IMG/VR virus record: IMGVR_UViG_3300025030_000041
Span: 124,001-188,000 of that record
Strand: one strand, 5' to 3'
DNA length: 64,000 bases
Below, one piece after another: positions 5,968 to 64,000 of the stretch. Position numbers and translations under genes: made by a program. The notes below the pieces were generated by a model. The model had not been told where the DNA came from. It made no database searches and worked only from the letters and a program-made list of their open reading frames with translations. Every line of letters begins with the position of its first letter. Position 1 is the stretch's first letter.

Positions 5968-5978
5968 TAAAAAATAAA

Positions 5979-6608
5979 ATGAAACATATAAAACTTTTTG
6001 AACAGTTTATATCTGAAGAAGACATACCTAAACTTAGTCGTAAAGATATATTTATACCTAGGAGGCTTAAAGAAAGATGGGATGACTTACTTATCCATTA
6101 CCTTAATAAAGGGTATACCAAAGAACAAATATTCGTTGCTAAACCTTTTAATGAACTTATTTTTATAACTAAAAATAATATAGAAGATTTTAAGAATATT
6201 AAAGTTATAATTGGTAATGTTAGAATAAGCGAAATACATGATTTAAGAGAGCTAAGTATAGAAGAAGTAAATGGATATTTTAGTTGCTCTTATAATAACT
6301 TAACTAGTCTAGATGGCGTCCCTAAAAAAGTTGACGAATTTTATTGTTCTAATAATAAACTAACTAATCTCAAAGGATCTCCTAGTATAGTTAACGGTGG
6401 TTTTTATTGTTCTAATAATAAACTAACTAGTTTAGAGGGAGCTCCTAATAATGTTAATGAATTTGATTGTTCTTATAATTATTTAACTAGTCTAGAAGAT
6501 GCTCCTAAAATAGTTAATGGAAATTTTTTTATTACTTATAATTATAAAGATTTTACAGAAAAAGAAGTAAGAGAAGTAATCGATGTTAAAGGAATAGCTT
6601 ATGTTTAA
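5979..6608 (+). CDS. capsid-targeted 21-aa LRR protein, paralogue 1 (4 repeats)
   Basis: MKHIKLFEQFISEE, IFIPRRLKERWDD core, FxCSxNxLTSLEGAP repeats; start moved from 5922 to the conserved ATG. Confidence 0.85.
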   Translation: MKHIKLFEQFISEEDIPKLSRKDIFIPRRLKERWDDLLIHYLNKGYTKEQIFVAKPFNELIFITKNNIEDFKNIKVIIGNVRISEIHDLRELSIEEVNGYFSCSYNNLTSLDGVPKKVDEFYCSNNKLTNLKGSPSIVNGGFYCSNNKLTSLEGAPNNVNEFDCSYNYLTSLEDAPKIVNGNFFITYNYKDFTEKEVREVIDVKGIAYV

Positions 6609-6623
6609 AATAATTATTATTAT

Positions 6624-8585: not shown

Positions 8586-8592
8586 TTTAAAT

Positions 8593-9228
8593 ATGAAACA
8601 TATAAAACTATTTGAACAATTCATATCTGAAGAAGACACTCCTAAGCTTAGTGCTAAAGATATATTTATACCTAGAAGACTTAAAGAAAGATGGGATGAC
8701 CTGTTACTTCCTTACCTAAATAAAGGTTATACCAAAGAACAAATATTTGTAGCTAAACCCTTTGATGAACCTATTGTTATAACTAAAAATAATATAGGAG
8801 ACTTTAAAAGTATTAAAGTTATAATTGGTAATGTTAGAATACGTGGAATAACTGATTTGAGGAAGTTAGGTATAGAGGAAGTAACTGGTTTTTTTGATTG
8901 TTCTAATAATAGCTTAACTAGTCTAGAAGGAAGTCCTATTATAGTTGGAGGATTTTTCTATTGTTATAATAATAATTTAACTAGTCTTGAAGGAGCTCCT
9001 GCTACATTTAATGGATGGTTTAATTGTTCATTTAATAGCTTAACTAGTCTTGAAGGAGCTCCTGCTACATTTAATGGATGGTTTAATTGTTCATTTAATA
9101 GCTTAACTAGTCTAGAAGGAGCTCCTAAAGTAGTTAATGGCAAATTTGCTATTAATGATAATATAAAGAACTTTACAGAAAAAGAAGTAAGAGAAGTAGT
9201 TGATGTAAAAGGAAAAGTTATTGTTTAA
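8593..9228 (+). CDS. capsid-targeted LRR protein, paralogue 2 (4 repeats)
   Basis: same architecture; near-perfect 63-bp tandem duplication around 8990-9120. Confidence 0.85.
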   Translation: MKHIKLFEQFISEEDTPKLSAKDIFIPRRLKERWDDLLLPYLNKGYTKEQIFVAKPFDEPIVITKNNIGDFKSIKVIIGNVRIRGITDLRKLGIEEVTGFFDCSNNSLTSLEGSPIIVGGFFYCYNNNLTSLEGAPATFNGWFNCSFNSLTSLEGAPATFNGWFNCSFNSLTSLEGAPKVVNGKFAINDNIKNFTEKEVREVVDVKGKVIV

Positions 9229-9229
9229 A

Positions 9230-9856
9230 ATGAAACATATTAAATTATTTGAAGAATATATTAATAGTATAGAACTAATTACTGAATTAGCGATTAGCCT
9301 TGAAACACTACTTGATATTAATAATAAGTCTATTGCATTAGTTATGCAAGAACTTAAACATAAAAAGTATAAATACTCTATTTATGATTTTGAAAATTCT
9401 AAAGTTCTTGGATTTATGGAAATTGCTGAAGACGACGGCATAATGCAAGTATCTAAGGTTGCTTCTGAAAAAGGTTATGGCCCGCTATTATACGATATAT
9501 CCATGATGAATATTTATCCAAACGGACTTTCACCAGATAGAAGCTCAATAACTAGTGGAGCTCTAAATTTATGGAAATACTATTATGAAAATAGGCGAGA
9601 TATTATAAAAAAAGAAATTAAACCAGGAGATCCTGCCTATATGGAATCATATAAAATGGGAGAAGACCTTACTATACATACTAACCCTGAAATTTTAAAA
9701 CTATTAAACACTATTTATTATTTAAAACCAACTACTACATATTATAAATATACATCATTAAGCAATCAAATAATTAATGATAAAAATGCTTCGCCTAACT
9801 ATATTTTAAATAAAGGCCAAACTTACTTTTGGAAAAAATACCTTAATAAAGTATAA
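9230..9856 (+). CDS. capsid-targeted protein with GNAT-like fold
   Basis: MKHIKLFEEYI N-terminus; QVSKVASEKGYGPLLYD resembles the GNAT acetyl-CoA motif A; SPDRSSITSGALNLWKYY. Confidence 0.55.
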   Translation: MKHIKLFEEYINSIELITELAISLETLLDINNKSIALVMQELKHKKYKYSIYDFENSKVLGFMEIAEDDGIMQVSKVASEKGYGPLLYDISMMNIYPNGLSPDRSSITSGALNLWKYYYENRRDIIKKEIKPGDPAYMESYKMGEDLTIHTNPEILKLLNTIYYLKPTTTYYKYTSLSNQIINDKNASPNYILNKGQTYFWKKYLNKV

Positions 9857-10097
9857 AAAACTCTAAATTTAAATACTTATTTACCAATCTATTATAAAAA
9901 CAGTTAATATAGATAGGGACAAGTATTTGTCTAATTATTTTAAGTTTATTTAAAACTTTTTTTGGTTTTAATAATATATCTTAAATAAATTCTCTTTGAA
10001 AAATACAGACTAGAGTTTGCCTAGCAATAACTAGAGTCTTTCTGGTAGTTGAATAAACTTAACTTCAATCATTGAGAATTATCTTATTTAATTAAAT

Positions 10098-10170
10098 TCC
10101 TCTGTAGCTCAGTTGGTAGAGCACATAACTGTTAATTATGTGGTCGGTGGATCATGCCCATCCAGAGGAG
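10098..10170 (+). tRNA. tRNA-Asn(GTT)
   Basis: acceptor TCCTCTG/CAGAGGA, D arm GCTC/GAGC, anticodon arm CATAA-CTGTTAA-TTATG, discriminator G; atypical T loop, no encoded CCA. Confidence 0.88.
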
Positions 10171-10188
10171 CATAAAAACTTTTATTTT

Positions 10189-10455
10189 ATGAATGATACT
10201 ACTAAATTTAAAGAAAACATTGAAAGTATATTAAATGAAATTGGATCTCTTTTAATAGAAAAAAATAGAAAATACGGTAATTCTGCCCTTAATCCAATTA
10301 GAATTATGAGTAAAGTAGGGCCTACTGAACAGATTCTAATTAGAATAGATGATAAACTAAATCGTATTAAAAATCAGCAATTAGATGAAGACGAGGATGT
10401 TATTAATGATTTAATTGGATATTTAATTTTATTAAAAATTGCAAGAAAAAAATAG
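10189..10455 (+). CDS. DUF1599-like (nucleotide-modification-associated) protein
   Basis: LLIEKNRKYGNS...IRIDDKLNRI...DLIGYLIL; start moved to 10189 because 10138 lies inside the tRNA. Confidence 0.7.
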   Translation: MNDTTKFKENIESILNEIGSLLIEKNRKYGNSALNPIRIMSKVGPTEQILIRIDDKLNRIKNQQLDEDEDVINDLIGYLILLKIARKK

Positions 10456-10492
10456 ATGCTGTAAAATAAATAGTTAAAAAAAACTATTTAAT

Positions 10493-10618
10493 ATGGCAAA
10501 GGGTAAAAACTCCGGAAATTTCAAAATAAGTTTAAATAAAAAGAAAACAAATAGAAAACCAAAAAGTAAAAAAAGAGGAGGTAACTTTAAGCACTCTTTA
10601 TTAGGCCATTCTAAATAG
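10493..10618 (+). CDS. 41-aa highly basic peptide
   Basis: own translation MAKGKNSGNFKISLNKKKTNRKPKSKKRGGNFKHSLLGHSK fills the gap before the topoisomerase gene. Confidence 0.55.
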   Translation: MAKGKNSGNFKISLNKKKTNRKPKSKKRGGNFKHSLLGHSK

Positions 10619-17499: not shown

Positions 17500-18393
17500 T
17501 TAACTATAAACTTTTCCTTTTACATCAATTAATTCTCTTACTTCTTTTTGTGTAAATTTCTTTATATTATTATCAATCCAAACATTTCCTTTAACTATTT
17601 CAGGGGCTCCGTCAAGACTAGTTAGCATATTGTTATTACACATAAAACTTTCATTAATTATTCGTGGAGTTCCAATTAAATTAGTTAATATATTATAAGC
17701 ACACTTAAAGTATCTACTGACTATATTAGGGCCGCCTTCAAGACTAGTTAAGTTATTATTAGAACAATCAAAATATCCATTAACTGCAGTAGGACATCCT
17801 TCTAGACTAGTTAGTTTATTAGTATTACAATCAACATATCCATTAATCAATTTAGGCAAGTTGACTAGACTAGTTAAGTTATTATAAGAACAACTAAACG
17901 CACCACTTACTGTTTTTGGACCTCCTTCAAGACTAGTTAAGTTATTATTAGAACAATCAAAATATCCATTAACTGTAACAGGAGCTCCTTCAAGACTAGT
18001 TAAATTATTAGCATAACAATAAAAATTTCCATTCACTATAGTAGGAGATCCGTCTAAACTAGTTAAGGCATTATCAGAACAATCAAAAAAACCATCTATT
18101 TCATCTATACTTAATACTCTTAAATCATTTATACCTTTCACTCTAACATTACCTATTATTACTTTAATATTTTTAAAGTCTTCTATATTAGTATGCCCTA
18201 TACTAATAGCTTCATTAATAGGTTTCACTACAAATATTTGGTCTTTGGTATAACCTTTATTAAGGTAAGGAATAAGTAAGTCATCCCATCTTTCTTTTAG
18301 CCTTCTAGGTATAAATATATCTTTAGCGCTAAGCTTAGGAGTAGGGCTTTCTTCTTCAGATATAAATTGTTCAAATAGTTTTATATGTTTCAT
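17500..18393 (-). CDS. capsid-targeted LRR protein, paralogue 3 (8 repeats)
   Basis: conserved N-terminal core plus eight 21-aa repeats. Confidence 0.85.
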   Translation of the reverse strand: MKHIKLFEQFISEEESPTPKLSAKDIFIPRRLKERWDDLLIPYLNKGYTKDQIFVVKPINEAISIGHTNIEDFKNIKVIIGNVRVKGINDLRVLSIDEIDGFFDCSDNALTSLDGSPTIVNGNFYCYANNLTSLEGAPVTVNGYFDCSNNNLTSLEGGPKTVSGAFSCSYNNLTSLVNLPKLINGYVDCNTNKLTSLEGCPTAVNGYFDCSNNNLTSLEGGPNIVSRYFKCAYNILTNLIGTPRIINESFMCNNNMLTSLDGAPEIVKGNVWIDNNIKKFTQKEVRELIDVKGKVYS

Positions 18394-19699: not shown

Positions 19700-20275
19700 T
19701 TAAACATAAACTTTTCCTTTAACATCAACTACTCCTTTTACCTCTTCTTCGGTAAAGTTCTTTGTATTATCATTAATAGCAAAGTCGTCATTAACTACTT
19801 TAGGAGCTCCTTTAAGGTTAGTTAGTTTGTTATGACTGCAATAAAATCCAGCGTTAACTATAATAGGAGCTCCTTCTAGACTAGTTAACGTATTATTACT
19901 ACAAAAATAATCTTTAGTTACTAATAATTTAGGTCCTCCTTTTAAGCTAGTTAATCTATTAAATGAACAATTGAAATCTCCAGACACTTCATCTAAATTT
20001 AATTCTTTTAAAATATCTCCATTTATTATAACATCACCTATTATTACTTTAATATCCTTAAATTCTTTTACATTATTTTTAGTTATCTCTAGCTCTTCAT
20101 CAAGGGGTTTAGCAACGAATATTTGTTCTTTAGTATAACCTTTATTAAGGTAAGGAAGTACTAAGTCATCCCACCTTTCTTTTAGTCTCCTAGGTATAAA
20201 GATGTCTTTAGCACTAAGTTTAGGTTTCTTAGAGTCTTCAAGTATAAATTGTTCAAATAGTTTTATAGGTTTCAC
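19700..20275 (-). CDS. capsid-targeted LRR protein, paralogue 4 (3 repeats, GTG start)
   Basis: MKPIKLFEQFILED plus family core and repeats. Confidence 0.85.
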   Translation of the reverse strand: MKPIKLFEQFILEDSKKPKLSAKDIFIPRRLKERWDDLVLPYLNKGYTKEQIFVAKPLDEELEITKNNVKEFKDIKVIIGDVIINGDILKELNLDEVSGDFNCSFNRLTSLKGGPKLLVTKDYFCSNNTLTSLEGAPIIVNAGFYCSHNKLTNLKGAPKVVNDDFAINDNTKNFTEEEVKGVVDVKGKVYV

Positions 20276-21708: not shown

Positions 21709-23685
21709 TTATTCAATTTTTTTTAGATTATTCCATTCAAATTTATAATTCCCACAATCATACACTCTATAAATATTCCTACTTATCATTATATCATGTT
21801 CAGTCATATTACTGTCATAACCCTCTGCTATCAATTTATCCTTTCTAAAATTAAACCTATGCCTCCTTACTCCATCTACTACATACCAATAATTAGGTCT
21901 GCTGGTACTCACATACTCAAATCCTAATTTAATATACAAGTTATTATCCTTGGCGTTTGTCCAACATCTATTAGCATAACTTATAATTTTAATAGGAGTA
22001 TACTCTTCCACAAAATATTTAAATAGTTTAGACGCTGCACCTATTACACTAGTATTTAACTTATTACAAAACCTTAATAACTCATACTCTCCATTTTTAG
22101 ATACTTGGCCTAAACTTTTTCTTTTATTACCAAATGTCATCAAACTAACTAACTCCTCTCCATAATACAAACCTATATTATATTTACTTACACACTTGCC
22201 CTGCAAATGATTATCTTCTAAAAACTGATTAGACTCTTTAAACGAGACTTCTTTAATTCTACACTTCCTAGAATATATTCTATTAAGAGTCTTATTTAAA
22301 AGGTTAAGTATACGTGATTTAATAATATCTTGCATATAAGTCCAGTCATCTTCCCATATATGAATTAAAGTTATATCATTTTTAATAGCAAGTTCAGTTT
22401 TTGTTAAATGATAGTTTTTATCTCTATATAATTCATTATGCCAATATACTCCATTAAATTCAAATGCTAATTTATAATCAGGTAAATATACGTCAAGTTC
22501 CTTTGGAGAAATAACACTTCTGTCATTAACTGTAATACTTATTAGAGTGTCTATTGATAAAATAAAATCATAAATACTTTTTTGAGAATCAGAGTAACTA
22601 TATACTGGATTACAATGAATACACGGAGTAACTTTATATCTTATTACTCTTAAATATAAAAAATTTAAAAGTATTGAGTACTCATTATTACATTTATCAC
22701 ATAAAATTTTAATATTTCTATTTAAATCTATACTTAGAATATTTAAATTATCATATTTTTCTTTTATTCTAATGATAGATTTTTTTAAATTATTATCTTT
22801 TATTTTATCAGTAATATATTTAGATTTAGTTGGATTATCTACCCCATACTTTTCTATTAAAGACTTTTTTATTTTATCTTTAACTAAACCAAATTGAACA
22901 TTATAGTCAACTTGGTATTTATCATTACATGTATTTTTTCTTTTAATATTTGAAGTTTGTATTTCTTCTTTATCTCTATTTAAATGAGAATTTTTAATTT
23001 TATTTCTTATTTTTTCTGATTGATTCGGATGGCTAACACCATACTTTTTAATAGAAGTATTTTTAATTTTATCTCTAATTTCTTTAGATTGAGAAATATA
23101 TTCTACTCCGCGTCTTTCTAAATTAGTTTTTTTAATTTTTTCTTTAACTTTTTCTAATTGAAAGACATTATCTATTCCATATTTTTGTTTTATTTTTAGT
23201 CTAATTTCGTCTTTGCTCTTATTAAATGGATGGTCAGTTTTTGTTTTACCATTCTTATAAGCAACTTCCCATGGAGAGTTACCTCCATTTTTTTTCATAG
23301 TTTCTTTTTTAAGTAGAATCGTTTCTTCATTAATTACGCATTGTGAACAACAATACTTTCTATACCCAATTGAAATATTTCTATAATCAACAATATTATT
23401 ACATTCTTTATTATTACATTTAATTATAGAAGTTATATCATTTATATAATGATATAATAATTGATTAAAATATTTATCATTTCTTAATAAACTTTCCAAA
23501 CTATTTTTAATACTGTAATTTAAAACTTCTAAATATAAATTAAAATAATTTTTCTTTATATATTTTTCAGTACATCTGGACGCTGGCCTATCTAATATAA
23601 AATCTATTATACCATTATACGAATCTTTAGGTTTTTCTGTAAAAACATTTTCTTCTAAAAGACTAATAACTTTATTTTTATCCAT
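21709..23685 (-). CDS. Hef-like homing endonuclease
   Basis: Cys clusters, KYGVxN repeats, ELDVYLPDYKLAFEFNGVYWH nuclease motif, C-terminal FLEDNHLQG...YELLRFC domain; free-standing downstream of tail tube. Confidence 0.75.
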   Translation of the reverse strand: MDKNKVISLLEENVFTEKPKDSYNGIIDFILDRPASRCTEKYIKKNYFNLYLEVLNYSIKNSLESLLRNDKYFNQLLYHYINDITSIIKCNNKECNNIVDYRNISIGYRKYCCSQCVINEETILLKKETMKKNGGNSPWEVAYKNGKTKTDHPFNKSKDEIRLKIKQKYGIDNVFQLEKVKEKIKKTNLERRGVEYISQSKEIRDKIKNTSIKKYGVSHPNQSEKIRNKIKNSHLNRDKEEIQTSNIKRKNTCNDKYQVDYNVQFGLVKDKIKKSLIEKYGVDNPTKSKYITDKIKDNNLKKSIIRIKEKYDNLNILSIDLNRNIKILCDKCNNEYSILLNFLYLRVIRYKVTPCIHCNPVYSYSDSQKSIYDFILSIDTLISITVNDRSVISPKELDVYLPDYKLAFEFNGVYWHNELYRDKNYHLTKTELAIKNDITLIHIWEDDWTYMQDIIKSRILNLLNKTLNRIYSRKCRIKEVSFKESNQFLEDNHLQGKCVSKYNIGLYYGEELVSLMTFGNKRKSLGQVSKNGEYELLRFCNKLNTSVIGAASKLFKYFVEEYTPIKIISYANRCWTNAKDNNLYIKLGFEYVSTSRPNYWYVVDGVRRHRFNFRKDKLIAEGYDSNMTEHDIMISRNIYRVYDCGNYKFEWNNLKKIE

Positions 23686-23758: not shown

Positions 23759-24319
23759 TTATGGTTTTCTTATTTCTGTCCAAGAGTCTGCTCTTAATGA
23801 TAAGTCTAATGCATAAAGTTCTTCTGAATTATAATCTAAAGCCATAGGATTAAATTTTTCATTTAATATAACGGGACTAAATTTAAATTCTCTAAAAATA
23901 TCTCCGTTTTTGTTGTGTATAGCAATATAACATTCTCCGGCATAATCTTTTTTAAGTCCTTGTGATCCTGTCTCAGGGTCAAATTGAATATCTGCCCATT
24001 TACGTAGTATATTATATACGTACATACTATTATTATCGTTTAAGTTAACGGTGAAGTTAATTTTAAGATCTGCTGTAGTATTTTCAGGTTTAGACTTAGC
24101 ATATGACCTAGTCGAGAATTTATATTTTTGTTCAACGACTCCAACTGGCGTAATTTCAGGTAGTCCTTCTATTTTTAGAACGTGTTCAACTAAAATTTCA
24201 GATCCTGCTGAAACTGTAGCCGGAGGAGTTATAATAACTTGAAATTGATTTAAAAATACAGGTTCGTAGTTTTTTACACTAGCTGTTGAATTTTTAAAAT
24301 GTGGTAAGCCTGATGCCAT
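23759..24319 (-). CDS. tail tube protein (T4 gp19-like)
   Basis: 186 aa; YEPVFLNQFQV, INFTVNLND, LRKWADIQFDPETG..G.KKDY tube signature. Confidence 0.8.
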   Translation of the reverse strand: MASGLPHFKNSTASVKNYEPVFLNQFQVIITPPATVSAGSEILVEHVLKIEGLPEITPVGVVEQKYKFSTRSYAKSKPENTTADLKINFTVNLNDNNSMYVYNILRKWADIQFDPETGSQGLKKDYAGECYIAIHNKNGDIFREFKFSPVILNEKFNPMALDYNSEELYALDLSLRADSWTEIRKP

Positions 24320-24375
24320 CTATATAGTATTATTTTTAGTTATTTATTTTATTTATTTATTCAAAAAAAAAACTT

Positions 24376-25011
24376 TTAAACATAAACGTCTTCTTTTACA
24401 TCAATTACTTCTATTACTTCTTTTTTTGTAAATTTCTTTGTATTATTAGAACAATCAAACCATCCATTAATTGTAGTAGGAGCTCCTTCAAGACTAGTTA
24501 AATAATTATAAGAACAATCAAAACCTCCATTAACTGTAACAGGGGCTCCTTCAAGACTAGTTAACTTATTATTAGAACAATAAAAATATCCATTAACTGT
24601 AACAGGAGCTCCTTCAAGACTAGTTAACTTATTATAAAAACATGAAAAATATCCATTAACCGTCATAGGAGCTCCTTCTAGACTAGTTAAGTTAGTATTA
24701 GAACAATCAAAATTTCCAACTACTTCTTCTATATTTAGCTCTCTTAAATCGTTTATTTCCTTTATTCTAACATTACTAATTATGACTTTAATATTCTTAA
24801 AGTCTTCTATATTATTTTTAGTTATAAGCATATCTTTATTAAAAGGTTTAGCAATAAATATTTGTTCTTTGGTATAGCCTTTATTTAGGTAAGGAAGTAA
24901 CAGGTCATCCCAACGTTCTTTAAGTCTTCTAGGTATAAATATATCTTTAGCACTAAGTTTAGGAGTTTCTTCTTCAGATATAAATTGTTCAAACAGCTTC
25001 ATATGTTTCAT
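24376..25011 (-). CDS. capsid-targeted LRR protein, paralogue 5 (4 repeats)
   Basis: family core and repeats. Confidence 0.85.
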   Translation of the reverse strand: MKHMKLFEQFISEEETPKLSAKDIFIPRRLKERWDDLLLPYLNKGYTKEQIFIAKPFNKDMLITKNNIEDFKNIKVIISNVRIKEINDLRELNIEEVVGNFDCSNTNLTSLEGAPMTVNGYFSCFYNKLTSLEGAPVTVNGYFYCSNNKLTSLEGAPVTVNGGFDCSYNYLTSLEGAPTTINGWFDCSNNTKKFTKKEVIEVIDVKEDVYV

Positions 25012-25016
25012 TATTT

Positions 25017-25343
25017 TTATGAATTTATTTGAGTAGAAGTATCTATTGTTTGCGATGTATCTGACAATTTTACAACTTCGTCTGATACAGATGGTCCAGT
25101 TGATAATTTGCGTACACCTAATAATGATGCTCCTAATGTTATTATACCAGATGAGTAAAAAATTATGTCGTTTTTATTACTTATATATGAAAAATCTATG
25201 CATCCATATATAAAGCATAATAGTCCTATTAAGATTGTAATAACTCCACATACTCCAGTAGAACTAGTTTTTCCATCGGAATTAGACAGCATTTGTTGCC
25301 AGCTAAATTTATTAATATTTTCTTTTAAATCTTCAATTGTCAT
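25017..25343 (-). CDS. two-TM membrane protein (holin-like)
   Basis: SNSDGKTSS followed by two hydrophobic helices. Confidence 0.5.
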   Translation of the reverse strand: MTIEDLKENINKFSWQQMLSNSDGKTSSTGVCGVITILIGLLCFIYGCIDFSYISNKNDIIFYSSGIITLGASLLGVRKLSTGPSVSDEVVKLSDTSQTIDTSTQINS

Positions 25344-25350
25344 TTTTTAT

Positions 25351-25533
25351 TTATATTTTTATTTCTCCTCTATATATAATTTGATTAAAATCGCTCATAT
25401 GGTCTATTACGAATCGTTTAGCAGAATCTTCAGATTTAAAATATAAAAAATCATATTTATCTATTACTCCAATAAGATAATTAATTTTTACTTCATATCT
25501 ATAGTTATCATCAGACTTATATGTATAATCCAT
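25351..25533 (-). CDS. hypothetical protein
   Basis: 60-aa ORF filling an operon gap. Confidence 0.5.
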   Translation of the reverse strand: MDYTYKSDDNYRYEVKINYLIGVIDKYDFLYFKSEDSAKRFVIDHMSDFNQIIYRGEIKI

Positions 25534-25545
25534 ATTATTTAATTT

Positions 25546-26175
25546 TTATTTAGGAGGGGTAGTCGCTGCTTCTTTTTTTCTATCTATTACTCCATAAATT
25601 ATTTTACTTCCTTTTTTAAAGTCTTGAATACTCCTAAATCTAAAAAATGTGGATCCTTCTACTACTATTGCAGTATAAGAAATTTTTGAATTTCCTAATT
25701 CAGTTTTAGCTTTAGATATATTTTGTGGATTTATTAATTCAATTTGTAATTGATTTGTTGTATCATCTGCTTCATTTAATGGAAATGTAAAGTATATAAT
25801 ATACACGTCACCAGATCTCCAATTATCAGAGTATAGTATGCCATCTAATTCGTCTTTATCAGAATCATCTAAGTTTCTCCATTTTTCTATTTTATAATTT
25901 CCTTTTTTAAATCCAATTGGTGAATCCCTTTCCATATTTCCAACTGAATATCCTTCGTCTTTTAAGTATTTTCTTGCATCATAAAATGCTTGAAAATCAG
26001 TTTCTCCTTTATCTACTTTTTCGGCTAATGCTACGTTTCTATTTTCGATTCCAAAATCATTTTTAATTAAATCAATATCAGATACTTTTTTATTAATGAA
26101 ATCATATAAGGTTTCATTTTTAATACTTACTAAATTTTCTTGTATAAATTCTTCAAATAATTTTATAAATTTCAT
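25546..26175 (-). CDS. capsid-targeted hypothetical protein
   Basis: MKFIKLFEEFIQE; alternative upstream ATG (26205) overlaps the LRR-6 stop. Confidence 0.7.
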   Translation of the reverse strand: MKFIKLFEEFIQENLVSIKNETLYDFINKKVSDIDLIKNDFGIENRNVALAEKVDKGETDFQAFYDARKYLKDEGYSVGNMERDSPIGFKKGNYKIEKWRNLDDSDKDELDGILYSDNWRSGDVYIIYFTFPLNEADDTTNQLQIELINPQNISKAKTELGNSKISYTAIVVEGSTFFRFRSIQDFKKGSKIIYGVIDRKKEAATTPPK

Positions 26176-26197
26176 ATTTTTATTTTTATTTTTATTT

Positions 26198-26833
26198 TTA
26201 AACATAAACCTTTCCTTTTACATCAATTACTTCTCTTACTTCTTTTTCTGTAAATTTCTTTGTATTATTAGAACAATCAAACCATCCATTAATTGTAGTA
26301 GGAGCTCCTTCAAGACTAGTTAGTTTATTCGTATTACAATCAAAATATCCATTAAATGTAGCAGGAGCTCCTTCAAGACTAGTTATATTATTAATAAAAC
26401 AATAATAACTTCCCTTAGCTATAGTAGGACCCCCTTCAAGACTATTTAACTTATTATTAGAACAATAAAAACCTCCATTAACTGTAGTAGGAGATCCTTC
26501 AAGACTAGTTAAACTATTATTAGAACAATAAAAAAAACCAGTTACTTCGTCTATATCTAGCCCACTCAAATAAGTTATTTCATGTATTCTAACGTTACCT
26601 ATTATAACTTTAATATTCTTAAAGTCTTCTATATTATTTTTAGTTATAAGCATATCTTTATTAAAAGGTTTAGCGACAAATATTTGTTCTTTAGTATAAC
26701 CTTTATTTAGGTAAGGAAGTAACAGGTCATCCCAACGTTCTTTAAGTCTTCTAGGTATAAATATATCTTTAGCACTAAGTTTAGGAGTTTCTTCTTCAGA
26801 TATAAACTGCTCAAAAAGTTTTATATGTTTCAT
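26198..26833 (-). CDS. capsid-targeted LRR protein, paralogue 6 (4 repeats)
   Basis: family core; N- and C-terminal blocks nearly identical to paralogue 5. Confidence 0.85.
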   Translation of the reverse strand: MKHIKLFEQFISEEETPKLSAKDIFIPRRLKERWDDLLLPYLNKGYTKEQIFVAKPFNKDMLITKNNIEDFKNIKVIIGNVRIHEITYLSGLDIDEVTGFFYCSNNSLTSLEGSPTTVNGGFYCSNNKLNSLEGGPTIAKGSYYCFINNITSLEGAPATFNGYFDCNTNKLTSLEGAPTTINGWFDCSNNTKKFTEKEVREVIDVKGKVYV

Positions 26834-27525
26834 TTTAATTCGTCTTGATTTAAATCTAGTACTTTATTAAAATTGTCATTTGATATTAACACAACTTTCA
26901 TAGGCTGGTTATTAGTATATTCTAAGTAATTTAATTTTGGGAATGCTATAAATTTAATATCATTATATTCAAACAAAAATGGGGATTCAATTTGTTCTTT
27001 AAATATATCAGATCCTGATGGTAATGTAATACTAGTTTTTTTAGATTTTACCCCTATATTTTTAGCAAAAAACTCTACAATATTTTTATTTGAAGTTTCA
27101 GTAAATATTAATAGACTATTAATATTCGTTTCTAAAGTTTTTAAAAGACTTGGGAATAATGTATTGTTTAAATAAGTAAAATATTGTTGTTCTTTAAGTA
27201 TATTTTCAGCTTGCTTAATTGATTCATCATCTTTAGTGTCATTCGCAGGCTCAGCTTCATTAATGAATGATAAAAAATCTTTAGTATATTGTTCATCTAT
27301 TTTATAAGTAAACCAGTTTGATTTTTCATTTAATTTAATACCAAATAATGATTTATTATTATAATTTATAGTTGAAATATAAAATTTTTTATTATTTGTT
27401 AGTTCTATTAATCTTATAGATTCTTTATTATTTTCTTTTATTAAAGAAATATTTTTTATTCTATTAGGTAAAATATTATTAGAATATAAAAAATTAGAGA
27501 TTATAGTATTTAATTGTCTTTCCAT
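26830..27525 (-). CDS. hypothetical protein
   Basis: 231-aa ORF coupled by ATGA overlap. Confidence 0.6.
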   Translation of the reverse strand: MERQLNTIISNFLYSNNILPNRIKNISLIKENNKESIRLIELTNNKKFYISTINYNNKSLFGIKLNEKSNWFTYKIDEQYTKDFLSFINEAEPANDTKDDESIKQAENILKEQQYFTYLNNTLFPSLLKTLETNINSLLIFTETSNKNIVEFFAKNIGVKSKKTSITLPSGSDIFKEQIESPFLFEYNDIKFIAFPKLNYLEYTNNQPMKVVLISNDNFNKVLDLNQDELK

Positions 27526-27825
27526 TTAATTTAATTTATTTTGAATAAAATATGTTATTTTAATACTACCATCAGCTTGAGTATCTATATCAAATAATTC
27601 AGTATCCCATAGATCTCCTAGGACATCATTCATTAGTTCTATGGTTAAAGTATCTTCTGGAATAACATTATACACATAATTTCCATCTGTAGTTACTCCA
27701 TCATATTCTATATCTCTAGCATGTTCTTTAAAGGTATTCCATAATATTTTTTTAATTTCATCTGGGTGATACTCTTCAAATTCATTAATAAATTCCTCAA
27801 ATATTTTAATGTGTTTCATTTTCAT
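27526..27825 (-). CDS. capsid-targeted small acidic protein
   Basis: MKHIKIFEEFINE. Confidence 0.7.
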   Translation of the reverse strand: MKMKHIKIFEEFINEFEEYHPDEIKKILWNTFKEHARDIEYDGVTTDGNYVYNVIPEDTLTIELMNDVLGDLWDTELFDIDTQADGSIKITYFIQNKLN

Positions 27826-28520
27826 GTATAAACTCCACCTTTTACTTTAACAGCGTTTCTCACTTCTTTTTCTGTAAATACTTTACTATTATAAGTAATA
27901 GTAAAATTTCCACCAACAATAGTAGGAGCTCCTTCTAGACTAATTAACATATTATCAGAACAATGAAAATTTCCAGTAACTGTAGTAGGAGCTCCTTCTA
28001 GACTAATTAACATATTATCAGAACAATGAAAATTTTCATTAACTGTAGTAGGAGCTCCTTCTAGACTAGTTAATTTATTATTAAAACAATAAAAATCTCC
28101 ATTAACTATAATAGGGCTTCCTTCAAGACTAGTTAATTTATTATTAAAACAATAAAAATCTCCATTAACTATAATAGGGCTTCCTTCAAGACTAGTTAGC
28201 TTATTATTAGAACAATTAAAATATCCAGTTACTTCTTCTATACCTAGTGCTCTCAGATCAGTTATTTCTTTTATTCTAACACCACCTATTATTACTTTAA
28301 TATTTTTAAAGTCTTCTATATTATCTTTAGTTATAATAATAGGTTCATTAAATGGTTTAGCAACAAGTATTTGTTCTTTGGTATAACCTTTATTTAGGTA
28401 AGGAATGAGCAAATCATCCCATCTTTCTTTAAGCCTCCTAGGTATAAATATATCTTTAGCGCTAGGCTTAGGAGTTTCTTCTTCAGATATGAATTGTTCA
28501 AAAAGTTTTATATATTTCAT
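27822..28520 (-). CDS. capsid-targeted LRR protein, paralogue 7 (5 repeats)
   Basis: family core; two pairs of near-identical 63-bp repeats. Confidence 0.85.
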   Translation of the reverse strand: MKYIKLFEQFISEEETPKPSAKDIFIPRRLKERWDDLLIPYLNKGYTKEQILVAKPFNEPIIITKDNIEDFKNIKVIIGGVRIKEITDLRALGIEEVTGYFNCSNNKLTSLEGSPIIVNGDFYCFNNKLTSLEGSPIIVNGDFYCFNNKLTSLEGAPTTVNENFHCSDNMLISLEGAPTTVTGNFHCSDNMLISLEGAPTIVGGNFTITYNSKVFTEKEVRNAVKVKGGVYT

Positions 28521-28981
28521 TTTCCTCCAATGTGATCTCCTATTATTGCTCCAACTGAGGCATTAAATAATCTACTTGTTAATAGGTCATATAAAATACC
28601 TTTTTCAATTCCTAGAGCTTTTGATATAGCTTTACCAATCCATGGTCCAGCAATAAACCCTGTTACGCCTCCTACTAATTTAGATATTATGCCTTCGTCT
28701 AATTTAGAAATTTCAGGATCCTTTTTTAGTTCTTCTAGTAGTTTAGTTTCTATTTCTTTATAGATACATAAAATGTCTTCATCATTTAATGATTCTTTAG
28801 TATTTTCATTAATTTTATAAATAATACTAATATTTTCTGCAATTCTAAGTATATTAGAAACAATTAGGTCTTTATTATCAATGAAGATAATTGTATCATC
28901 CAATTCCTCTAAAATATTTGCAGATATTATTTCTTTATCTAAAATAATAGTTTCTACTATACAGTCATTAAATAATTTCAT
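28517..28981 (-). CDS. hypothetical protein with Gly-rich amphipathic C-terminus
   Basis: KLDEGIISKLVGGVTGFIAGPWIGKAISKALGI; start moved to ATG 28981. Confidence 0.55.
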   Translation of the reverse strand: MKLFNDCIVETIILDKEIISANILEELDDTIIFIDNKDLIVSNILRIAENISIIYKINENTKESLNDEDILCIYKEIETKLLEELKKDPEISKLDEGIISKLVGGVTGFIAGPWIGKAISKALGIEKGILYDLLTSRLFNASVGAIIGDHIGGK

Positions 28982-28985
28982 ATTA

Positions 28986-29612
28986 TTATTTATATAAATT
29001 ATGTAGTTTTTCTTTAGCATTTTTTAATTTATGCTTATCCTCACTAGATAGTTTCGTGCCTGCTCTATTAATATAATAATTTAGTCTAGACATTGCTTGT
29101 TTTAGGCTATCCGATTCTTTCTTAAGATATTTAGCTATTTCAATTGCATTTTTTGTAAAAATTCCTTCTTTAGGCTCCCATTTAGTTTTAACTTTTCCAG
29201 ACCATTTCTTTTCAAATACATGTTTTTCATTTAATTTAAGTGATTCGTCATAAGTAACTTCTTCCCAAGATATAATTTCTTTTAATATTCTTTCATAAAT
29301 AAGACCAGTTAATCGATCTTCTATAGTTACTGATTTTGGTCCTTTTTCATTATCAAGTTTAATATCTTTTGCTGCTTTTAATGCATCATCAATTGATGTA
29401 TATTCACCGATAACTGTAATTCCAGAGTTATCTTCATAATACTCTGAGTCAATATCTAAAAATGTATTACTAACACTAACCCAAAACATATTAGGTTCTT
29501 TATCATCCCCTACCATCTCTTTTGCATTTTTAGCAGCTTCTGTATTTTCAGTATAGTTAGCATAGGATTCATTTACAGATTTCCAGTCAGAATATTTTTT
29601 AATATAATTCAT
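28986..29612 (-). CDS. capsid-targeted hypothetical protein
   Basis: MNYIKKYSDWKSVNE variant of the motif; KLNE internal site. Confidence 0.65.
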   Translation of the reverse strand: MNYIKKYSDWKSVNESYANYTENTEAAKNAKEMVGDDKEPNMFWVSVSNTFLDIDSEYYEDNSGITVIGEYTSIDDALKAAKDIKLDNEKGPKSVTIEDRLTGLIYERILKEIISWEEVTYDESLKLNEKHVFEKKWSGKVKTKWEPKEGIFTKNAIEIAKYLKKESDSLKQAMSRLNYYINRAGTKLSSEDKHKLKNAKEKLHNLYK

Positions 29613-29630: not shown

Positions 29631-29930
29631 TTATTTATTTTGAAATTCATTTAGTATTTTTAAGTTATTATGTAATTTTTCACATAGAGACATAAAATCG
29701 GGTCTTTCATTTTCTATTAAATAAAACCATTCTCCATTTATTTTGTGGTGTTTCCATATTCTATGAAAAAACCCTTCTAAATTCCTTGCATATTTACTTT
29801 TAAATGTTGAAATTACTTCAATTTTATTTGGACATCCAGTTTGTAAATTTTTTAATCTTGACTCTAAATCTCGAGTAATCCCAATTTTATAATTATCAGT
29901 TTGGTCTTGTCTTAGTAAATAAATTAGCAT
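29631..29930 (-). CDS. GIY-YIG superfamily (T5orf172/MUG113-like) protein
   Basis: IYLL..YKIGITRDLESRLKNLQTG...E..FH...GEWF. Confidence 0.8.
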   Translation of the reverse strand: MLIYLLRQDQTDNYKIGITRDLESRLKNLQTGCPNKIEVISTFKSKYARNLEGFFHRIWKHHKINGEWFYLIENERPDFMSLCEKLHNNLKILNEFQNK

Positions 29931-40647: not shown

Positions 40648-41094
40648 TTAAGTATAGACATCACCTTTTACATCAATTAATTTTCGTACTTCTTCTTCTG
40701 TAAATTTCTTCTTATTATTATTACTAAAAAAATTTCCATTAACTATTTTAGGAGCGCCTTCTAGACTAATTAAGTTATTATAAGAACAACTAAAATATCC
40801 AACTACTTCTTCTATATTTAGCTCTCTTAAATCGTTTATTTCCTTTATTTTAGCATTACCTATTAAAACCGTAATATTCTTAAAATCTTTCATATTATCT
40901 TTAGTTATAATAAAAGTGTCATTAATGGGTTTCACTACAAATATTTGTTCTTTGGTATAACCTTTATTAAGGTAAGGAAGTAATAAGTCATCCCATCTTT
41001 CTTTAAGCCTCCTAGGTATAAATATATCTTTAGCGCTAAGCTTAGGAGTTTCTTCTTCGGATATAAATTGTTCAAATAGTTTTATGTGTTTCAT
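40648..41094 (-). CDS. capsid-targeted LRR protein, paralogue 8 (1 repeat)
   Basis: minimal member with intact N- and C-caps. Confidence 0.85.
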   Translation of the reverse strand: MKHIKLFEQFISEEETPKLSAKDIFIPRRLKERWDDLLLPYLNKGYTKEQIFVVKPINDTFIITKDNMKDFKNITVLIGNAKIKEINDLRELNIEEVVGYFSCSYNNLISLEGAPKIVNGNFFSNNNKKKFTEEEVRKLIDVKGDVYT

Positions 41095-43233: not shown

Positions 43234-43749
43234 TTAATAATTAATAATTCCAGCTTTAGTATCAATTGCATGTTTTATTTCTTTTTGTAAAAACTTTTTG
43301 CCTCTATTTTGGGATATGATAACATCATCTGTAACTAATTTAGGAGCTCCTTCTAGACTAGTTAATGCATTAAAAGTACTAATGAATCTGCCATTTACTA
43401 TTTTAGGACTACCTTTACGATTAGTTAAATTATTGCTAGAACAATTAAAATCTCCAAGCACCTCATCTATATCTATATCCCATTTATTCATATCGCCGTT
43501 TATATAAACTAAACCAACTATAATTTTAATATCTTTAAAATCTTTTACATTATTATCATTTATAATAACTTCATCTCTAAGAGATTTAGCAACTACTATT
43601 TGTTCTTTTGTATAACCTTTATTAAGGTAAGGGATAAGAAGGTCATCCCATCTTTCTTTAAGTCTTCTAGGTATAAATATATTTTTACGACTAAGTTTAG
43701 GTATGTCTTCTTCAGATATAAACTGTTCAAATAATTTAATACGTCTCAT
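43234..43749 (-). CDS. capsid-targeted LRR protein, paralogue 9 (2 repeats, divergent)
   Basis: MRRIKLFEQFISEE plus family core. Confidence 0.8.
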   Translation of the reverse strand: MRRIKLFEQFISEEDIPKLSRKNIFIPRRLKERWDDLLIPYLNKGYTKEQIVVAKSLRDEVIINDNNVKDFKDIKIIVGLVYINGDMNKWDIDIDEVLGDFNCSSNNLTNRKGSPKIVNGRFISTFNALTSLEGAPKLVTDDVIISQNRGKKFLQKEIKHAIDTKAGIINY

Positions 43750-43798: not shown

Positions 43799-44296
43799 TT
43801 AAAAATTAAAATCTTTTGCAATTTTAGTTATATTGTTATCTAATTCAGTTAGGTCACACTCTTTAGATTTTAATATATAAAAATCCAAATTAAAAAATTG
43901 TAATGGCTTATGTGTATACTTTAAAGATGACCTGTATTTTTTAACAATTTTATAACAAAACCTATCATAAAAAAGTCTTCTAGTTTTAGATTCGTCTAAT
44001 GCACAAAAAATAAAAGACTCTGGCTGTATTTCTTCTATAAATTGAATGGCTGCTGAATCGATAGTAGGAATAGATAAAAAAGCTTTTTTAGGATCATTTA
44101 ACAACTTAAATTCTCCATTTGCTTTAAACTTAAATAACCAGTGGTTTTGTAAAGTTGAATAGTTTGTGATAGCTATATCATATTTAATATCATCTATTTT
44201 AAATACTCCTATCCATTCGCTTTGCGATTTATTCCAATTTATTAATAACGGATTTTTTAATCCTTCTATAATAAATTTTTGAAAATTTTTAAACAT
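43799..44296 (-). CDS. capsid-targeted protein (intact relative of pseudogene at 2232/3897)
   Basis: MFKNFQKFIIE; RRLFYDRF motif. Confidence 0.65.
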   Translation of the reverse strand: MFKNFQKFIIEGLKNPLLINWNKSQSEWIGVFKIDDIKYDIAITNYSTLQNHWLFKFKANGEFKLLNDPKKAFLSIPTIDSAAIQFIEEIQPESFIFCALDESKTRRLFYDRFCYKIVKKYRSSLKYTHKPLQFFNLDFYILKSKECDLTELDNNITKIAKDFNF

Positions 44297-44993
44297 AAAC
44301 TTCTCCTTTTATATCAATAACATGTCTTACTTCTTTTTCTGTAAATTTCTTTAAATTATTGCTTATATTAAAATCTCCTCTTATTATAGAGGGTGTCCCT
44401 TCAAGGCTAGTTAATCTATTATAAGAACAATCAAAAAAGCCATTAACTATAACGGGACCACCATCTAAACTAGTTAAGATATTATTAGAACAATTAAAGT
44501 TACCTCCTATTGTGGAAAGGCATCCTTCAAGACTAGTTAACTTATTATTAGAGCATGAGAAATTTCCATTAACTGATACAGGACTTCCTTCTAAACTAGT
44601 TAAGTTATTATTAGAACAACTAAAATACCCATTAACTATAGTAGGACCGCCTTCTAAACTAGTTAGTTTATTTAACTTATTTAAGTAACAATCAAAATTT
44701 CCTGATATTTCATCTACCCTTAATACTCTCAAATCATTTATTCCTCGTATTATAGCATTACCTATTATAACTTTAATATTCTTAAAGTCTTTTATATTAT
44801 TTTTAGTTATACTAATAACTTCATTAAAGGGTTTAGTTACAAATATTTGGTCTTTTGTATAACCTTTATTTAGATATGGAATACACAAAGAATCTCGTCT
44901 TTCTTTAAGTGGTATAAATATATCTTTGACACTATAATTATGATTCTTAAATTTATTAGATGCATTACAGTCTAATAGACTATGATATTTCAT
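44289..44993 (-). CDS. LRR protein, paralogue 10 (5 repeats; targeting peptide replaced)
   Basis: family core from KDIFIP onward, unrelated first ~20 aa. Confidence 0.8.
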   Translation of the reverse strand: MKYHSLLDCNASNKFKNHNYSVKDIFIPLKERRDSLCIPYLNKGYTKDQIFVTKPFNEVISITKNNIKDFKNIKVIIGNAIIRGINDLRVLRVDEISGNFDCYLNKLNKLTSLEGGPTIVNGYFSCSNNNLTSLEGSPVSVNGNFSCSNNKLTSLEGCLSTIGGNFNCSNNILTSLDGGPVIVNGFFDCSYNRLTSLEGTPSIIRGDFNISNNLKKFTEKEVRHVIDIKGEVYV

Positions 44994-62945: not shown

Positions 62946-63578
62946 TCAAAAATAAACTTCTCCTTTTATATCAACTATGCCTCTTATTTCTTCTTCTGTA
63001 AATTTCTTCACATTATCGATAATCATAAAATCTCCTTTAACTATCTTAGGAGCTCCTTCTATACTAGTTATAATATTATAAGAACACTTAAAATCTCCAT
63101 TAACTATCGTAGGAGCTCCTACTAGACTAGTTATATCATTAGTAGAACAACTAAAATCTCCATTAGATATAGTAGGGCCGCCTTCTAGACTAGTTAACTT
63201 ATTATGAAAACAACTAAAATCTCCATTAGATATAGTAGGAGATCCTTTTAAACTAGTTAATCCATTAAATGAACAATTAAACTCTCCAGATACTTCTTCT
63301 AAATTTAATTCTTTTAAAATATCACCATTTATTCTAACACCACCTATTATTACTTTAATATCCTTAAATTCTTTTACATTAGTGTTATTTATACTAATAA
63401 ATTCATTAAAATCTTTAGATACATATATTTGGTCTTTAGTATACCCTTTATTTAGGTATGGAATAAGTAAGTCATCCCATCTTTCTTTAAGTCTTCTTGG
63501 TATAAATATATCTTTAGCACTAAGTTTAGGAGCTTCTTCTTTGAGTATAAATTGTTCAAATAGTTTTATATGTTTCAT
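62946..63578 (-). CDS. capsid-targeted LRR protein, paralogue 11 (4 repeats)
   Basis: family core; middle block shared with paralogue 4. Confidence 0.85.
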   Translation of the reverse strand: MKHIKLFEQFILKEEAPKLSAKDIFIPRRLKERWDDLLIPYLNKGYTKDQIYVSKDFNEFISINNTNVKEFKDIKVIIGGVRINGDILKELNLEEVSGEFNCSFNGLTSLKGSPTISNGDFSCFHNKLTSLEGGPTISNGDFSCSTNDITSLVGAPTIVNGDFKCSYNIITSIEGAPKIVKGDFMIIDNVKKFTEEEIRGIVDIKGEVYF

Positions 63579-64000
63579 TTCTTAAATTCTCTTTTAACAA
63601 AACTATAAGTATTAATATTTTCAGGTTTTATAAAAATTTCAGTTTCAGTAGGTCTATTAACTAATGTGAAGCTATTACCTTTATCTTCTATAAATCCATT
63701 AAATTTTGCAGCAGAATACACAATTTCCCCATTTTTAGTCATATCATAAACTTTATATACTGAATCTTTTATTAAATTATCTTCCATATTACGTGATTCT
63801 TTAGAAAACGCTAAGTAATCATTATTATTTTGAAATTTTGAAGAAGACTTTTCATCAATACTTTCATTTTCTTTTTCCGGTACATTATACCCTTTTCTTT
63901 TAGCATATGAATAAGCTATTGCAATAGCTTGTTGTTGAGGGTATCCTTCATGCCTTAATTTAGAAATCTTTTTACTTATATAATCTTGAGCATCTTTACT
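63575..64000 (-). CDS. partial phage protein (5' end outside window)
   Basis: frame is open from 64000 to 63575; contains ISKKISKLRHEGYPQQQAIAIAYS motif. Confidence 0.6.
   Translation of the reverse strand, partial: SKDAQDYISKKISKLRHEGYPQQQAIAIAYSYAKRKGYNVPEKENESIDEKSSSKFQNNNDYLAFSKESRNMEDNLIKDSVYKVYDMTKNGEIVYSAAKFNGFIEDKGNSFTLVNRPTETEIFIKPENINTYSFVKREFKK

Follow-up and report, generated by a model that had tools for sequence, protein, structure and literature searches.

How does a single phage genome come to hold many versions of one repeat protein, and do the copies diversify by exchanging parts, by gaining and losing repeats, or by point change only? A 246-kb groundwater jumbo-phage record encodes 18 copies of a small leucine-rich-repeat (LRR) protein, dispersed over at least 180 kb of the genome, and 11 of these lie within the window, i.e. 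the whole 64,000-nt stretch of DNA analysed here (Table 1). The copies begin with a leader, MKxIKLFEQFIxEE, continue through an N-cap helix and degenerate first repeats into 0 to 7 internal repeats of 21 residues, and end in a C-cap; as a whole, each copy amounts to a single LRR domain, 148-297 aa long. Allowing at most one mismatch, the window has 38 occurrences of the repeat core, TAACTAGTYTWGAAGG, compared to 0.01 expected from shuffles, and all 38 are inside the 11 copies. The core contains 17 invariant nt, and 63-bp arrays were detected by TRF in copies 5, 6 and 7. Among the 47 internal units, near-invariant V, F, C, N and L residues occupy unit positions 11, 15, 17 and 20 and position 1 of the next unit. 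Relatives are nearly all viral. Megablast of 10 kb of the region against phage records found no match, and a PHROGs search returned weak families of unknown function only.

Table 1. LRR copies, their parts and neighbouring leader-bearing ORFs, in window coordinates.
Feature	Position	Strand	Remarks
Copy 1 (g07)	5979..6608	+	209 aa
Copy 2 (g08)	8593..9228	+	211 aa; r2 8977-9039 = r3 9040-9102 (63/63)
Leader-bearing ORF without repeat units	9230..9856	+	208 aa; directly downstream of copy 2
Copy 3 (g09)	17500..18393	-	297 aa, 7 internal units
Copy 4 (g10)	19700..20275	-	GTG start
Copy 5 (g11)	24376..25011	-	211 aa
Copy 5 leader, N-cap and first degenerate repeats	25011-24691	-	
Copy 5 units	r1 24690-24628, r2 24627-24565, r3 24564-24502	-	
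Copy 5 last repeat and C-cap	24501-24376	-	
Putative young tract common to copies 5 and 6	24393..24500 (copy 6: 26215-26322)	-	108 nt, 2 mismatches; begins at repeat core
Leader-bearing ORF without repeat units	25546..26175	-	leader MKFIKLFEEFIQE; directly downstream of copy 6
Copy 6 (g12)	26198..26833	-	211 aa
Copy 6 N-terminal part	26833-26513	-	
Copy 6 units	r1 26512-26450, r2 26449-26387, r3 26386-26324	-	
Copy 6 last repeat and C-cap	26323-26198	-	
Leader-bearing ORF without repeat units	27526..27825	-	99 aa; directly downstream of copy 7
Copy 7 (g13)	27822..28520	-	232 aa
Copy 7 N-terminal part	28520-28200	-	
Copy 7 units r1, r2	r1 28199-28137, r2 28136-28074	-	62/63 identical
Copy 7 units r3, r4	r3 28073-28011, r4 28010-27948	-	60/63 identical
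Copy 7 cap	27947-27822	-	
Copy 8 (g14)	40648..41094	-	148 aa, without internal unit
Copy 9 (g15)	43234..43749	-	171 aa, most divergent of the copies
Copy 10 (g16)	44289..44993	-	234 aa; unrelated residues in place of leader
Copy 11 (g17)	62946..63578	-	210 aa

The 21-residue units fall within the LRR superfamily definition of 20-30 residues with an LxxLxLxxNxL-type segment. An AF2 model of copy 6 (pLDDT 78, pTM 0.71) was compared to known structures with VIA-align, in which most of the top matches were solved LRR proteins (Z 8-10), together with a small number of receptor L-domain and other structures. Foldseek against the PDB gave nothing at E<=0.001, so that the LRR fold was visible only with the wide VIA search. 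The LRR copies are thus modelled as a curved LRR-type solenoid. Pfam LRR_4 scored 17.6-22.1 bits on the copies, compared to a cut-off of 27, and precomputed PF12799 matches are present on many of their relatives; Pfam matches to DUF4893 and NUP210 were rejected as spurious.

The closest solved sequence was InlJ (PDB 3bz5, E=5.5e-19), which aligned unit by unit over ~120 residues with gaps of single residues only and which is known for LRRs containing cysteine (PMC7291126). Because of this match, the 63-bp period and the presence of Cys at position 17 in 46 of the 47 internal units, the repeats are assigned by sequence to the InlJ cysteine-ladder LRR subtype. The phage proteins share with InlJ the 21-residue period and the conserved core Cys in the LxxLxLxxNxL segment, but do not have its signal peptide, internalin N-domain, inter-repeat region, MucBP domain or LPXTG anchor. 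Membership in the internalin family of Listeria was rejected: the copies are a single LRR domain with no internalin domains in Pfam, and the NCBIfam InlJ model, with its cut-off of 1700 bits, scored them at 53. The LRR domains of IpaH, SspH1 and YopM, of the bacterial short LRR class, likewise have short repeats with an NxLTxL...P motif; SspH1 (E=4e-6) and IpaH9.8 (E=6e-3) were matched in sequence, and YopM and SspH1 in structure (Z ~8-9). This likeness is one of repeat scaffold only, and the phage proteins contain no E3 ligase domain or secretion signal.

Based on its reading of the letters, an earlier note had proposed that ongoing gene conversion and slippage through the repeat core generate new specificities. 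The near-exact tandem 63-bp units that it described in copies 2 and 7 were found as claimed (Table 1), and they stand out from the mean identity of 43.7/63 over all unit pairs. Identity of at least 58/63 was observed in 4 of 45 adjacent unit pairs and in 7 of 2035 non-adjacent ones (Fisher p=5.7e-5), supporting recent tandem duplication of 63-bp units. An internal duplication of three units is suggested for copy 3, in which 52 nt recur identically 189 nt away.

Evidence for exchange between copies had initially consisted of shared peptide blocks. All of the quoted blocks were present in the copies named and were only 0-2 nt apart in DNA. Nevertheless, short common blocks of 8-12 residues are, taken alone, weak evidence of exchange, because identical residues mostly take identical codons in a genome of 26% GC. 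Recombination detection and phylogeny had been put forward as checks in the note. The PHI test was significant among the paralogues (p=0.0005), and over-long shared runs were observed in 5 of 120 gene pairs, none of them matched in 2000 permutations. The run in g01/g18 covers 110 consecutive polymorphic sites, in a tract of 323 nt with 4 mismatches. Trees of three gene segments rejected each other (AU, p 6e-5 to 1e-73); the sister of copy 4 was g04 over codons 1-55, copy 11 over what remains of the N-terminal part and copy 2 at the cap, with bootstrap values of at least 92% in each case. In the short segments compared (150-170 nt), and with small pS counts, pS along the gene went from 0.24 to 0.016 to 0.33 in g01/g18 (Fisher p=0.002 for 0.24 vs 0.016), and was 0.20, 0.26 and 0.04 in g11/g12 (copies 5 and 6) and 0.37, 0.33 and 0.11 in g02/g03. 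Because the PHI test, the over-long tracts, the mutually rejecting segment trees and the shifting synonymous divergence all point the same way, exchange of segments between paralogues is supported by these sequence comparisons, and the mosaicism is statistically solid.

In contrast to these results, a swap of middles between copies 5 and 6 was not supported. dS was equal in the 5' block (0.22) and the middle (0.24) of this pair, while dN was 0.011 and 0.253, respectively, suggesting purifying selection on the one part and diversifying or relaxed selection on the other within one lineage. A younger tract is apparent only over the 3' ~110 nt, where dS was 0.04. The pair thus agrees with an alternative in which the family arose by duplication and divergence only, and apparent mosaics reflect uneven selection along the gene, purifying over the N-terminal part and the cap but diversifying over the repeats. 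That young units differ mostly at hypervariable codons also fits this alternative. However, it leaves unexplained why synonymous divergence itself shifts along g01/g18, why the 323-nt tract lies between flanks that are 8% and ~30% divergent, and why copy 4 has three different sisters in segments whose trees reject a common topology. We therefore consider divergence only improbable, and largely refuted by the synonymous-site and AU comparisons.

The scale of exchange and the position of its boundaries are less clear. Unit r2 of copy 3 (g09) and r2 of copy 5 (g11) are identical at 61/63 positions, but whole-unit exchange of this kind is not fully separable from common descent with fast change of hypervariable codons in neighbouring units. 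Seven of eight tract boundaries in the repeat region fell at the repeat core, a small count that is biased because tracts run through invariant cores automatically, and breakpoints at the core are therefore tentatively supported. Thus, exchange and recent unit duplication, as proposed in the earlier note, stood, and the passage of both through the core has the weaker standing of these boundaries.

Six unit positions, 7, 9, 14, 16, 19 and 21, are exposed and hypervariable. pN/pS was 1.76 at these positions compared to 0.16 at conserved positions, a comparison that uses non-independent pairs and hypervariable positions chosen from the data being compared. Of the 21 non-synonymous changes between units of young pairs, 16 were located on the six positions. 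It appears from these substitution patterns that fold-determining positions are under strong purifying selection and that the six exposed positions are replaced fast.

A further alternative is that mosaics and tandem duplicates are short-read chimeras between near-identical repeats. Other assemblies of the same phage contain copy 2 minus one unit, copy 7 and g03 minus two units each, and four chimeras (unit-deleted or chimeric proteins P0005, P0006, P0022, P0011, P0014, P0015 and P0017), and in a 73.9-kb contig the upstream flank of g18 is joined to the downstream flank of g01 via a hybrid gene. Ten runs from four studies contain part of the stretch, as k=31 contigs only; over 24000-29000 these end inside every LRR gene, and their two joints (24531 to 28060, 28105 to 28193) are as shared 31-mers would produce. 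Against an artefact in the record, 15 of the 18 protein sequences were letter-for-letter identical to proteins from other assemblies, with g11 and g12 differing by one residue, and JGI, ENA k127, k141 and ANAN16 contigs of 16-20 kb were 99.99-100% identical to the record except for one 63-bp unit. In addition, divergent mosaics such as copy 4 contain no long identical stretch for an assembler to cross. An assembly origin is thus very unlikely.

The assembly variants were set aside as evidence of ongoing change: the deleted units share a 33-74-nt exact stretch with a neighbour, and their deletion is therefore what de Bruijn graph collapse would give. Other assemblies contain variants of copies 5 and 6 that differ at one residue and match the other copy at that site, and these were also rejected as swaps; the copy 5 change is one base in DNA, at window position 25000, and the copy 6 variant is V53I, seen at the protein level. 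In practical terms, it is at the LRR genes that short-read assembly of this phage breaks or errs.

Hypermutation by a diversity-generating retroelement, which the focus of variation on few codons of a phage-encoded predicted binding domain might suggest, is extremely improbable, since no reverse transcriptase (PF00078) was found in the record (92% complete, ~19.5 kb absent; controls positive), no template repeat was seen, and substitutions in young unit pairs are of mixed type.

We consider it likely that the family, whose architecture, recent unit duplications, mosaic histories and site-specific replacement pattern are observed in the genes themselves, diversified by unit gain and loss, exchange between copies and fast replacement at exposed positions. 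Unequal recombination or slippage between 63-bp units would add or remove units, and homologous exchange (gene conversion) between dispersed copies would produce mosaic genes. The invariant 17-nt core and the conserved 5' segments could serve as stretches of identity, with the recombination machinery presumably acting through the cores, while amino acids at the six exposed positions per unit would be replaced rapidly and fold positions conserved. The products would be binding modules with targets that differ between copies.

How such proteins might be delivered is suggested by the leader. Its 13 residues are present on 17 LRR genes and on 6 unrelated ORFs, similarity among leader-bearing genes begins exactly at the start codon, and I-S-E occupies residues 11-13 in most copies. 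The genome encodes a gp21-type protease and a gp23-type capsid protein, with a Peptidase_S77 match (37.8 bits, cut-off 27) at G000 88639-89136, adjoining g02. The T4 internal-protein leader is MKTYQEFIAE (PMC8442874), the T4 protease gp21 cuts at ITE and LTE sites (PMC5694885), and the internal proteins of T-even phages are diverse, with a targeting leader as their sole common part (PMC3012670). As in T4 IPI-III, otherwise unrelated proteins here have a short N-terminal leader in common, ending in I-x-E, the kind of site cut by gp21. In contrast to T4 internal proteins, the phage LRR proteins are not basic (pI 4.9-9.2), and the leader match is too short for statistics. The resemblance of the leader to the T4 capsid-targeting sequence is a lead, not a result. 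It is possible, though doubtful, that the leader is a capsid-targeting propeptide and that the 18 LRR paralogues and the six other leader proteins are packed in the head, undergo trimming by the gp21-type protease and are ejected into the host along with the DNA, as a recombining arsenal of binders against variable host defence or surface proteins.

A similar design was found in other huge phages, in which a leader M..K..(L/I)FE is followed by multi-copy cysteine-ladder LRRs. In the giant phage SPN3US, the ejection paralogues gp53 and gp54 have identical N-terminal propeptides (PMC5694885). Phage virion proteins can carry LRR or beta-helix domains alongside an N-terminal module that is conserved, as in Goslar, where a DUF7941 module precedes LRR domains (bioRxiv 10.64898/2026.04.21.720040). 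The likeness of the SPN3US and Goslar proteins to the LRR copies is one of architecture, with no sequence relationship seen, and it compares virion proteins to predicted gene products.

LRR families diversified by recombination include plant resistance-gene clusters and lamprey variable lymphocyte receptors. The phage family has the same gain and loss of units by unequal crossing-over, exchange via short conserved stretches and hypervariable exposed positions, but differs in being germ-line-like evolution in one genome, with dispersed copies and neither a cassette array nor a cytidine deaminase. Unit duplication, inter-copy exchange and surface hypervariability are a standard LRR recognition design in plants, animals and bacterial pathogens, and here this design takes the form of an 18-copy family in one phage. 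While the mode of diversification is familiar, the phage family that carries it is undescribed; a literature search of partial coverage returned no relevant work on LRR multigene families of phages or on ejection proteins with LRRs, which leaves novelty unproven. The common leader opens an experimental route to how the LRR proteins are delivered. Multi-copy look-alike families are also present in a 735-kb phage and in the 195-kb Vibrio phages, and make up many clusters of viral proteins that are uncharacterised, suggesting that large phages maintain a diversifying set of predicted binding modules for dealing with their hosts.

The 246,115-bp IMG/VR record (completeness 92% by CheckV, GC ~26%), in which the window spans bases 124001-188000, comes from groundwater metagenomes. 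Its gene content makes it a large myovirus-like phage: a T4-type major capsid protein, gp21-type prohead protease, tail sheath, tail-tube-like protein and terminase are all present, as are homing endonucleases. The same phage occurs in other assemblies at up to 265.6 kb. The record carries 18 LRR paralogues (g01 to g18), 11 of which lie in the window (copies 1 to 11, g07 to g17). The diversity described in the earlier note is real and was mostly read correctly: all of the peptide blocks quoted there were found in the named copies, with DNA differences of 0-2 nt, and the conserved repeat core occurred 38 times in the window at ≤1 mismatch, as compared to 0.01 expected by chance, in family genes only.

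Each family protein is essentially one LRR domain. It starts with a leader (MKxIKLFEQFIxEE), which a linker (pLDDT <50) connects to an N-cap helix (residues 28-43). Degenerate first repeats come next, then 0-7 internal 21-residue units, a final unit in which isoleucine replaces the cysteine, and a short helix at the C terminus. In the unit consensus, L-T-S-L-E-G-x-P-x-x-V-x-G-x-F-x-C-x-x-N-x, positions 1-4, 6, 8, 13, 15, 17 and 20 are near-invariant, while positions 7, 9, 14, 16, 19 and 21 are hypervariable; the unit corresponds to the LxxLxLxxNxL segment, its core residues being valine, phenylalanine and cysteine. In the structural search, solved LRR proteins came out on top at Z ~10, among them Leptospira LIC12234, internalins, Roco, YopM and SspH1. 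The best sequence match to a solved protein was to Listeria InlJ, with unit aligning against unit (E=5.5e-19); next came the SspH1 and IpaH9.8 LRR domains. Repeats that contain cysteine (the 'cysteine ladder') are a known trait of InlJ (PMC7291126); the phage proteins have the same repeat subtype, but lack all remaining internalin parts. Two copies depart from this architecture: copy 10 (window 44289-44993) has lost the leader and its first ~20 residues are unrelated, and g06 (whole record 95362-95961) keeps the leader without the N-cap segment. Each could be either a decaying or a specialised copy.

The family is a mosaic. Exchange between paralogues, as had been proposed, was detected by the PHI test (p=0.0005; N-terminal part and cap aligned, 17 genes), and in a GENECONV-style permutation, 5 of 120 pairs had shared runs of polymorphic sites reached by none of 2000 shuffles, with g01 and g18 sharing 110 consecutive sites. 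Maximum-likelihood trees were built for three segments (codons 1-55, the rest of the N-terminal part, and the cap), and each tree was rejected by the other two segments (AU p 6e-5 to 1e-73). The partner of copy 4 (g10) changed from g04 to g17 to g08 along these segments, with bootstrap values of 92-97%. Selection alone cannot explain this signal, since synonymous divergence also shifts along the genes: pS between g01 and g18 was 0.24 over nt 1-114, 0.016 over nt 115-438 (Fisher p=0.002) and 0.33 in the cap, and between g02 and g03 it was 0.37, 0.33 and 0.11. The suggestion that exchange occurs at the repeat core was tentatively supported, with 7 of 8 boundaries of high-identity tracts in the repeat region falling there, but the count is small, its binomial p of ~0.002 was estimated by hand assuming a ~0.32 chance per random boundary, and invariant cores lengthen tracts by construction.

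Copies 5 and 6 (g11 and g12), previously thought to have swapped middles, require a different reading. Their identity is high, low and high along the gene (~96%, 78% and 97%), and dN rises from 0.011 in the 5' block to 0.253 in the middle, whereas dS is nearly equal in the two (0.22 and 0.24). Thus, the two copies have a single age across the first 510 nt, and the divergence of their middles reflects fast amino-acid replacement, not module swapping. Only the last 108 nt, which begin at a repeat core, are a younger tract (2 mismatches, dS 0.04). Family-wide data point the same way: in four collinear genes, pN/pS was 1.76 at the six hypervariable positions versus 0.16 at conserved positions, and these six positions held 16 of 21 non-synonymous changes in young unit pairs. 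In the second strand of each unit of the predicted model, core residues 15 and 17 are interleaved with positions 14 and 16, which should thus face outward on the sheet. Two local features were also seen. At window position 25000, the record has C, which gives Met (ATG) as the fourth codon of copy 5; the sole other assembly compared in DNA (L017) is one base off the record, Ile at this codon is a variant on six contigs, and Logan contigs of two runs have T (ATA, Ile, matching other paralogues). The C is a rare variant or a record error. The stop codon of copy 6 is separated from the leader of the ORF that follows by a perfect 6-bp microsatellite (TATTTT x 4.3, plus strand, window 26175-26200); translation starting at the upstream ATG (26205) would read it as KNKNKNKN.

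Near-exact tandem 63-bp units were present where they had been reported, in copy 2 (g08, r2 and r3, 63/63) and copy 7 (g13, r1 and r2, 62/63). Further pairs were g13 r3/r4 (60/63) and g03 r1/r2 (58/63), against an average identity of 43.7/63 (n=2080 pairs), and in g09 (copy 3) a 52-nt stretch recurs identically three units away. Arrays of 63-bp period were found by TRF in copies 5, 6 and 7. Near-identical pairs are strongly enriched for adjacency (4/45 adjacent versus 7/2035 non-adjacent, p=5.7e-5).

Coordinates of LRR copies and associated features
Feature	Location	Strand	Remark
Copy 5 (g11)	window 24376-25011	-	
Copy 6 (g12)	window 26198-26833	-	
Copy 7 (g13)	window 27822-28520	-	
Five-copy LRR cluster g02-g06	whole record 89200-95961		just upstream of protease and capsid genes
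gp21-type prohead protease	whole record 88639-89136	-	directly downstream of g02
658-aa HNH/homing-endonuclease-like protein (DUF7487)	window 21709-23685	-	among LRR genes
99-aa T5orf172/MUG113-type protein	window 29631-29930	-	among LRR genes
tRNA-Asn (GTT)	window 10098-10171	+	sole tRNA of window
Leader ORF without LRR units	window 9230-9856	+	
Leader ORF without LRR units	window 25546-26175	-	
Leader ORF without LRR units	window 27526-27825	-	
Leader ORF without LRR units	whole record 63676-63996		
Leader ORF without LRR units	whole record 112073-113179		
Leader ORF without LRR units	whole record 210331-211143		
Hybrid gene P0015	IMGVR_UViG_3300025012_000068 (L004, 73.9 kb), 10001-10570		g18-g01 junction
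Cysteine-ladder LRR tandem cluster, at least 4 paralogues	LR756501.1 (735-kb uncultured phage), 5013-8639		

Other assemblies contained variants with one unit fewer in copy 2 (contigs as long as 265,604 bp), two fewer in copy 7 (two versions) and two fewer in g03, as well as four chimeric genes (g18/g01, g07/g05, g04/g02 and g07/g02). The rest of the variant contigs examined (L018 and L019) was identical to the record. Every change sits in 33-300 nt of exact sequence common to neighbouring units or copies, the kind of stretch that de Bruijn assemblers collapse or use to jump from one copy to another. Run contigs (k=31) stop inside every LRR copy, and a 265.6-kb scaffold from another assembly starts inside g05, just before g06; thus, assemblies break at LRR genes. 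In contig L004, sequence from upstream of g18 (~209.2 kb in the record) is joined through the hybrid gene to sequence from downstream of g01 (~25.7 kb); g18 and g01 have a 323-nt stretch in common that differs at 4 positions. The contig is probably an assembly chimera rather than a recombinant genome, because a real genome would need a large deletion or a circle.

The leader (first 11-14 residues) is found on 17 of the 18 LRR genes and on six unrelated ORFs, which start MKxIKLFE(E/Q)FI and four of which immediately follow an LRR gene. The start codon marks the precise onset of similarity; the DNA before it is unrelated. This upstream DNA is A-rich, several genes overlap the preceding stop codon, and no Shine-Dalgarno-like sequence was found before any of the 18 start codons of the family. 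In sequence, the leader is similar to the T4 capsid-targeting sequence, MKTYQEFIAE (PMC8442874), which is the sole common part of the diverse T-even internal proteins (PMC3012670). T4 gp21 cleaves after glutamate at sites such as ITE and LTE (PMC5694885). This likeness, the type of gp21 site and the gp21-type protease near g02 lead us to hypothesize that the leader may target the LRR and other leader-bearing proteins to the prohead; however, T4 internal proteins are basic and the LRR proteins are not.

A word search gave 4309 matches to the family. The nearest Atlas clusters were 98-100% viral, without a functional name, and 50 of 101 metagenomic relatives start M..K..(L/I)FE. Look-alike multi-copy families occur in 195-kb Vibrio phages and in the 735-kb uncultured phage, whose LRR copies start MIKxF..(F/Y)E; one further match in that phage, outside the cluster, contains an in-frame TGA. 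In the present phage, the DUF7487 and T5orf172/MUG113-type elements could be a source of breaks that start gene conversion. The literature searched apparently contains no description of this diversification mechanism in phages; for LRR families, it is a familiar one.
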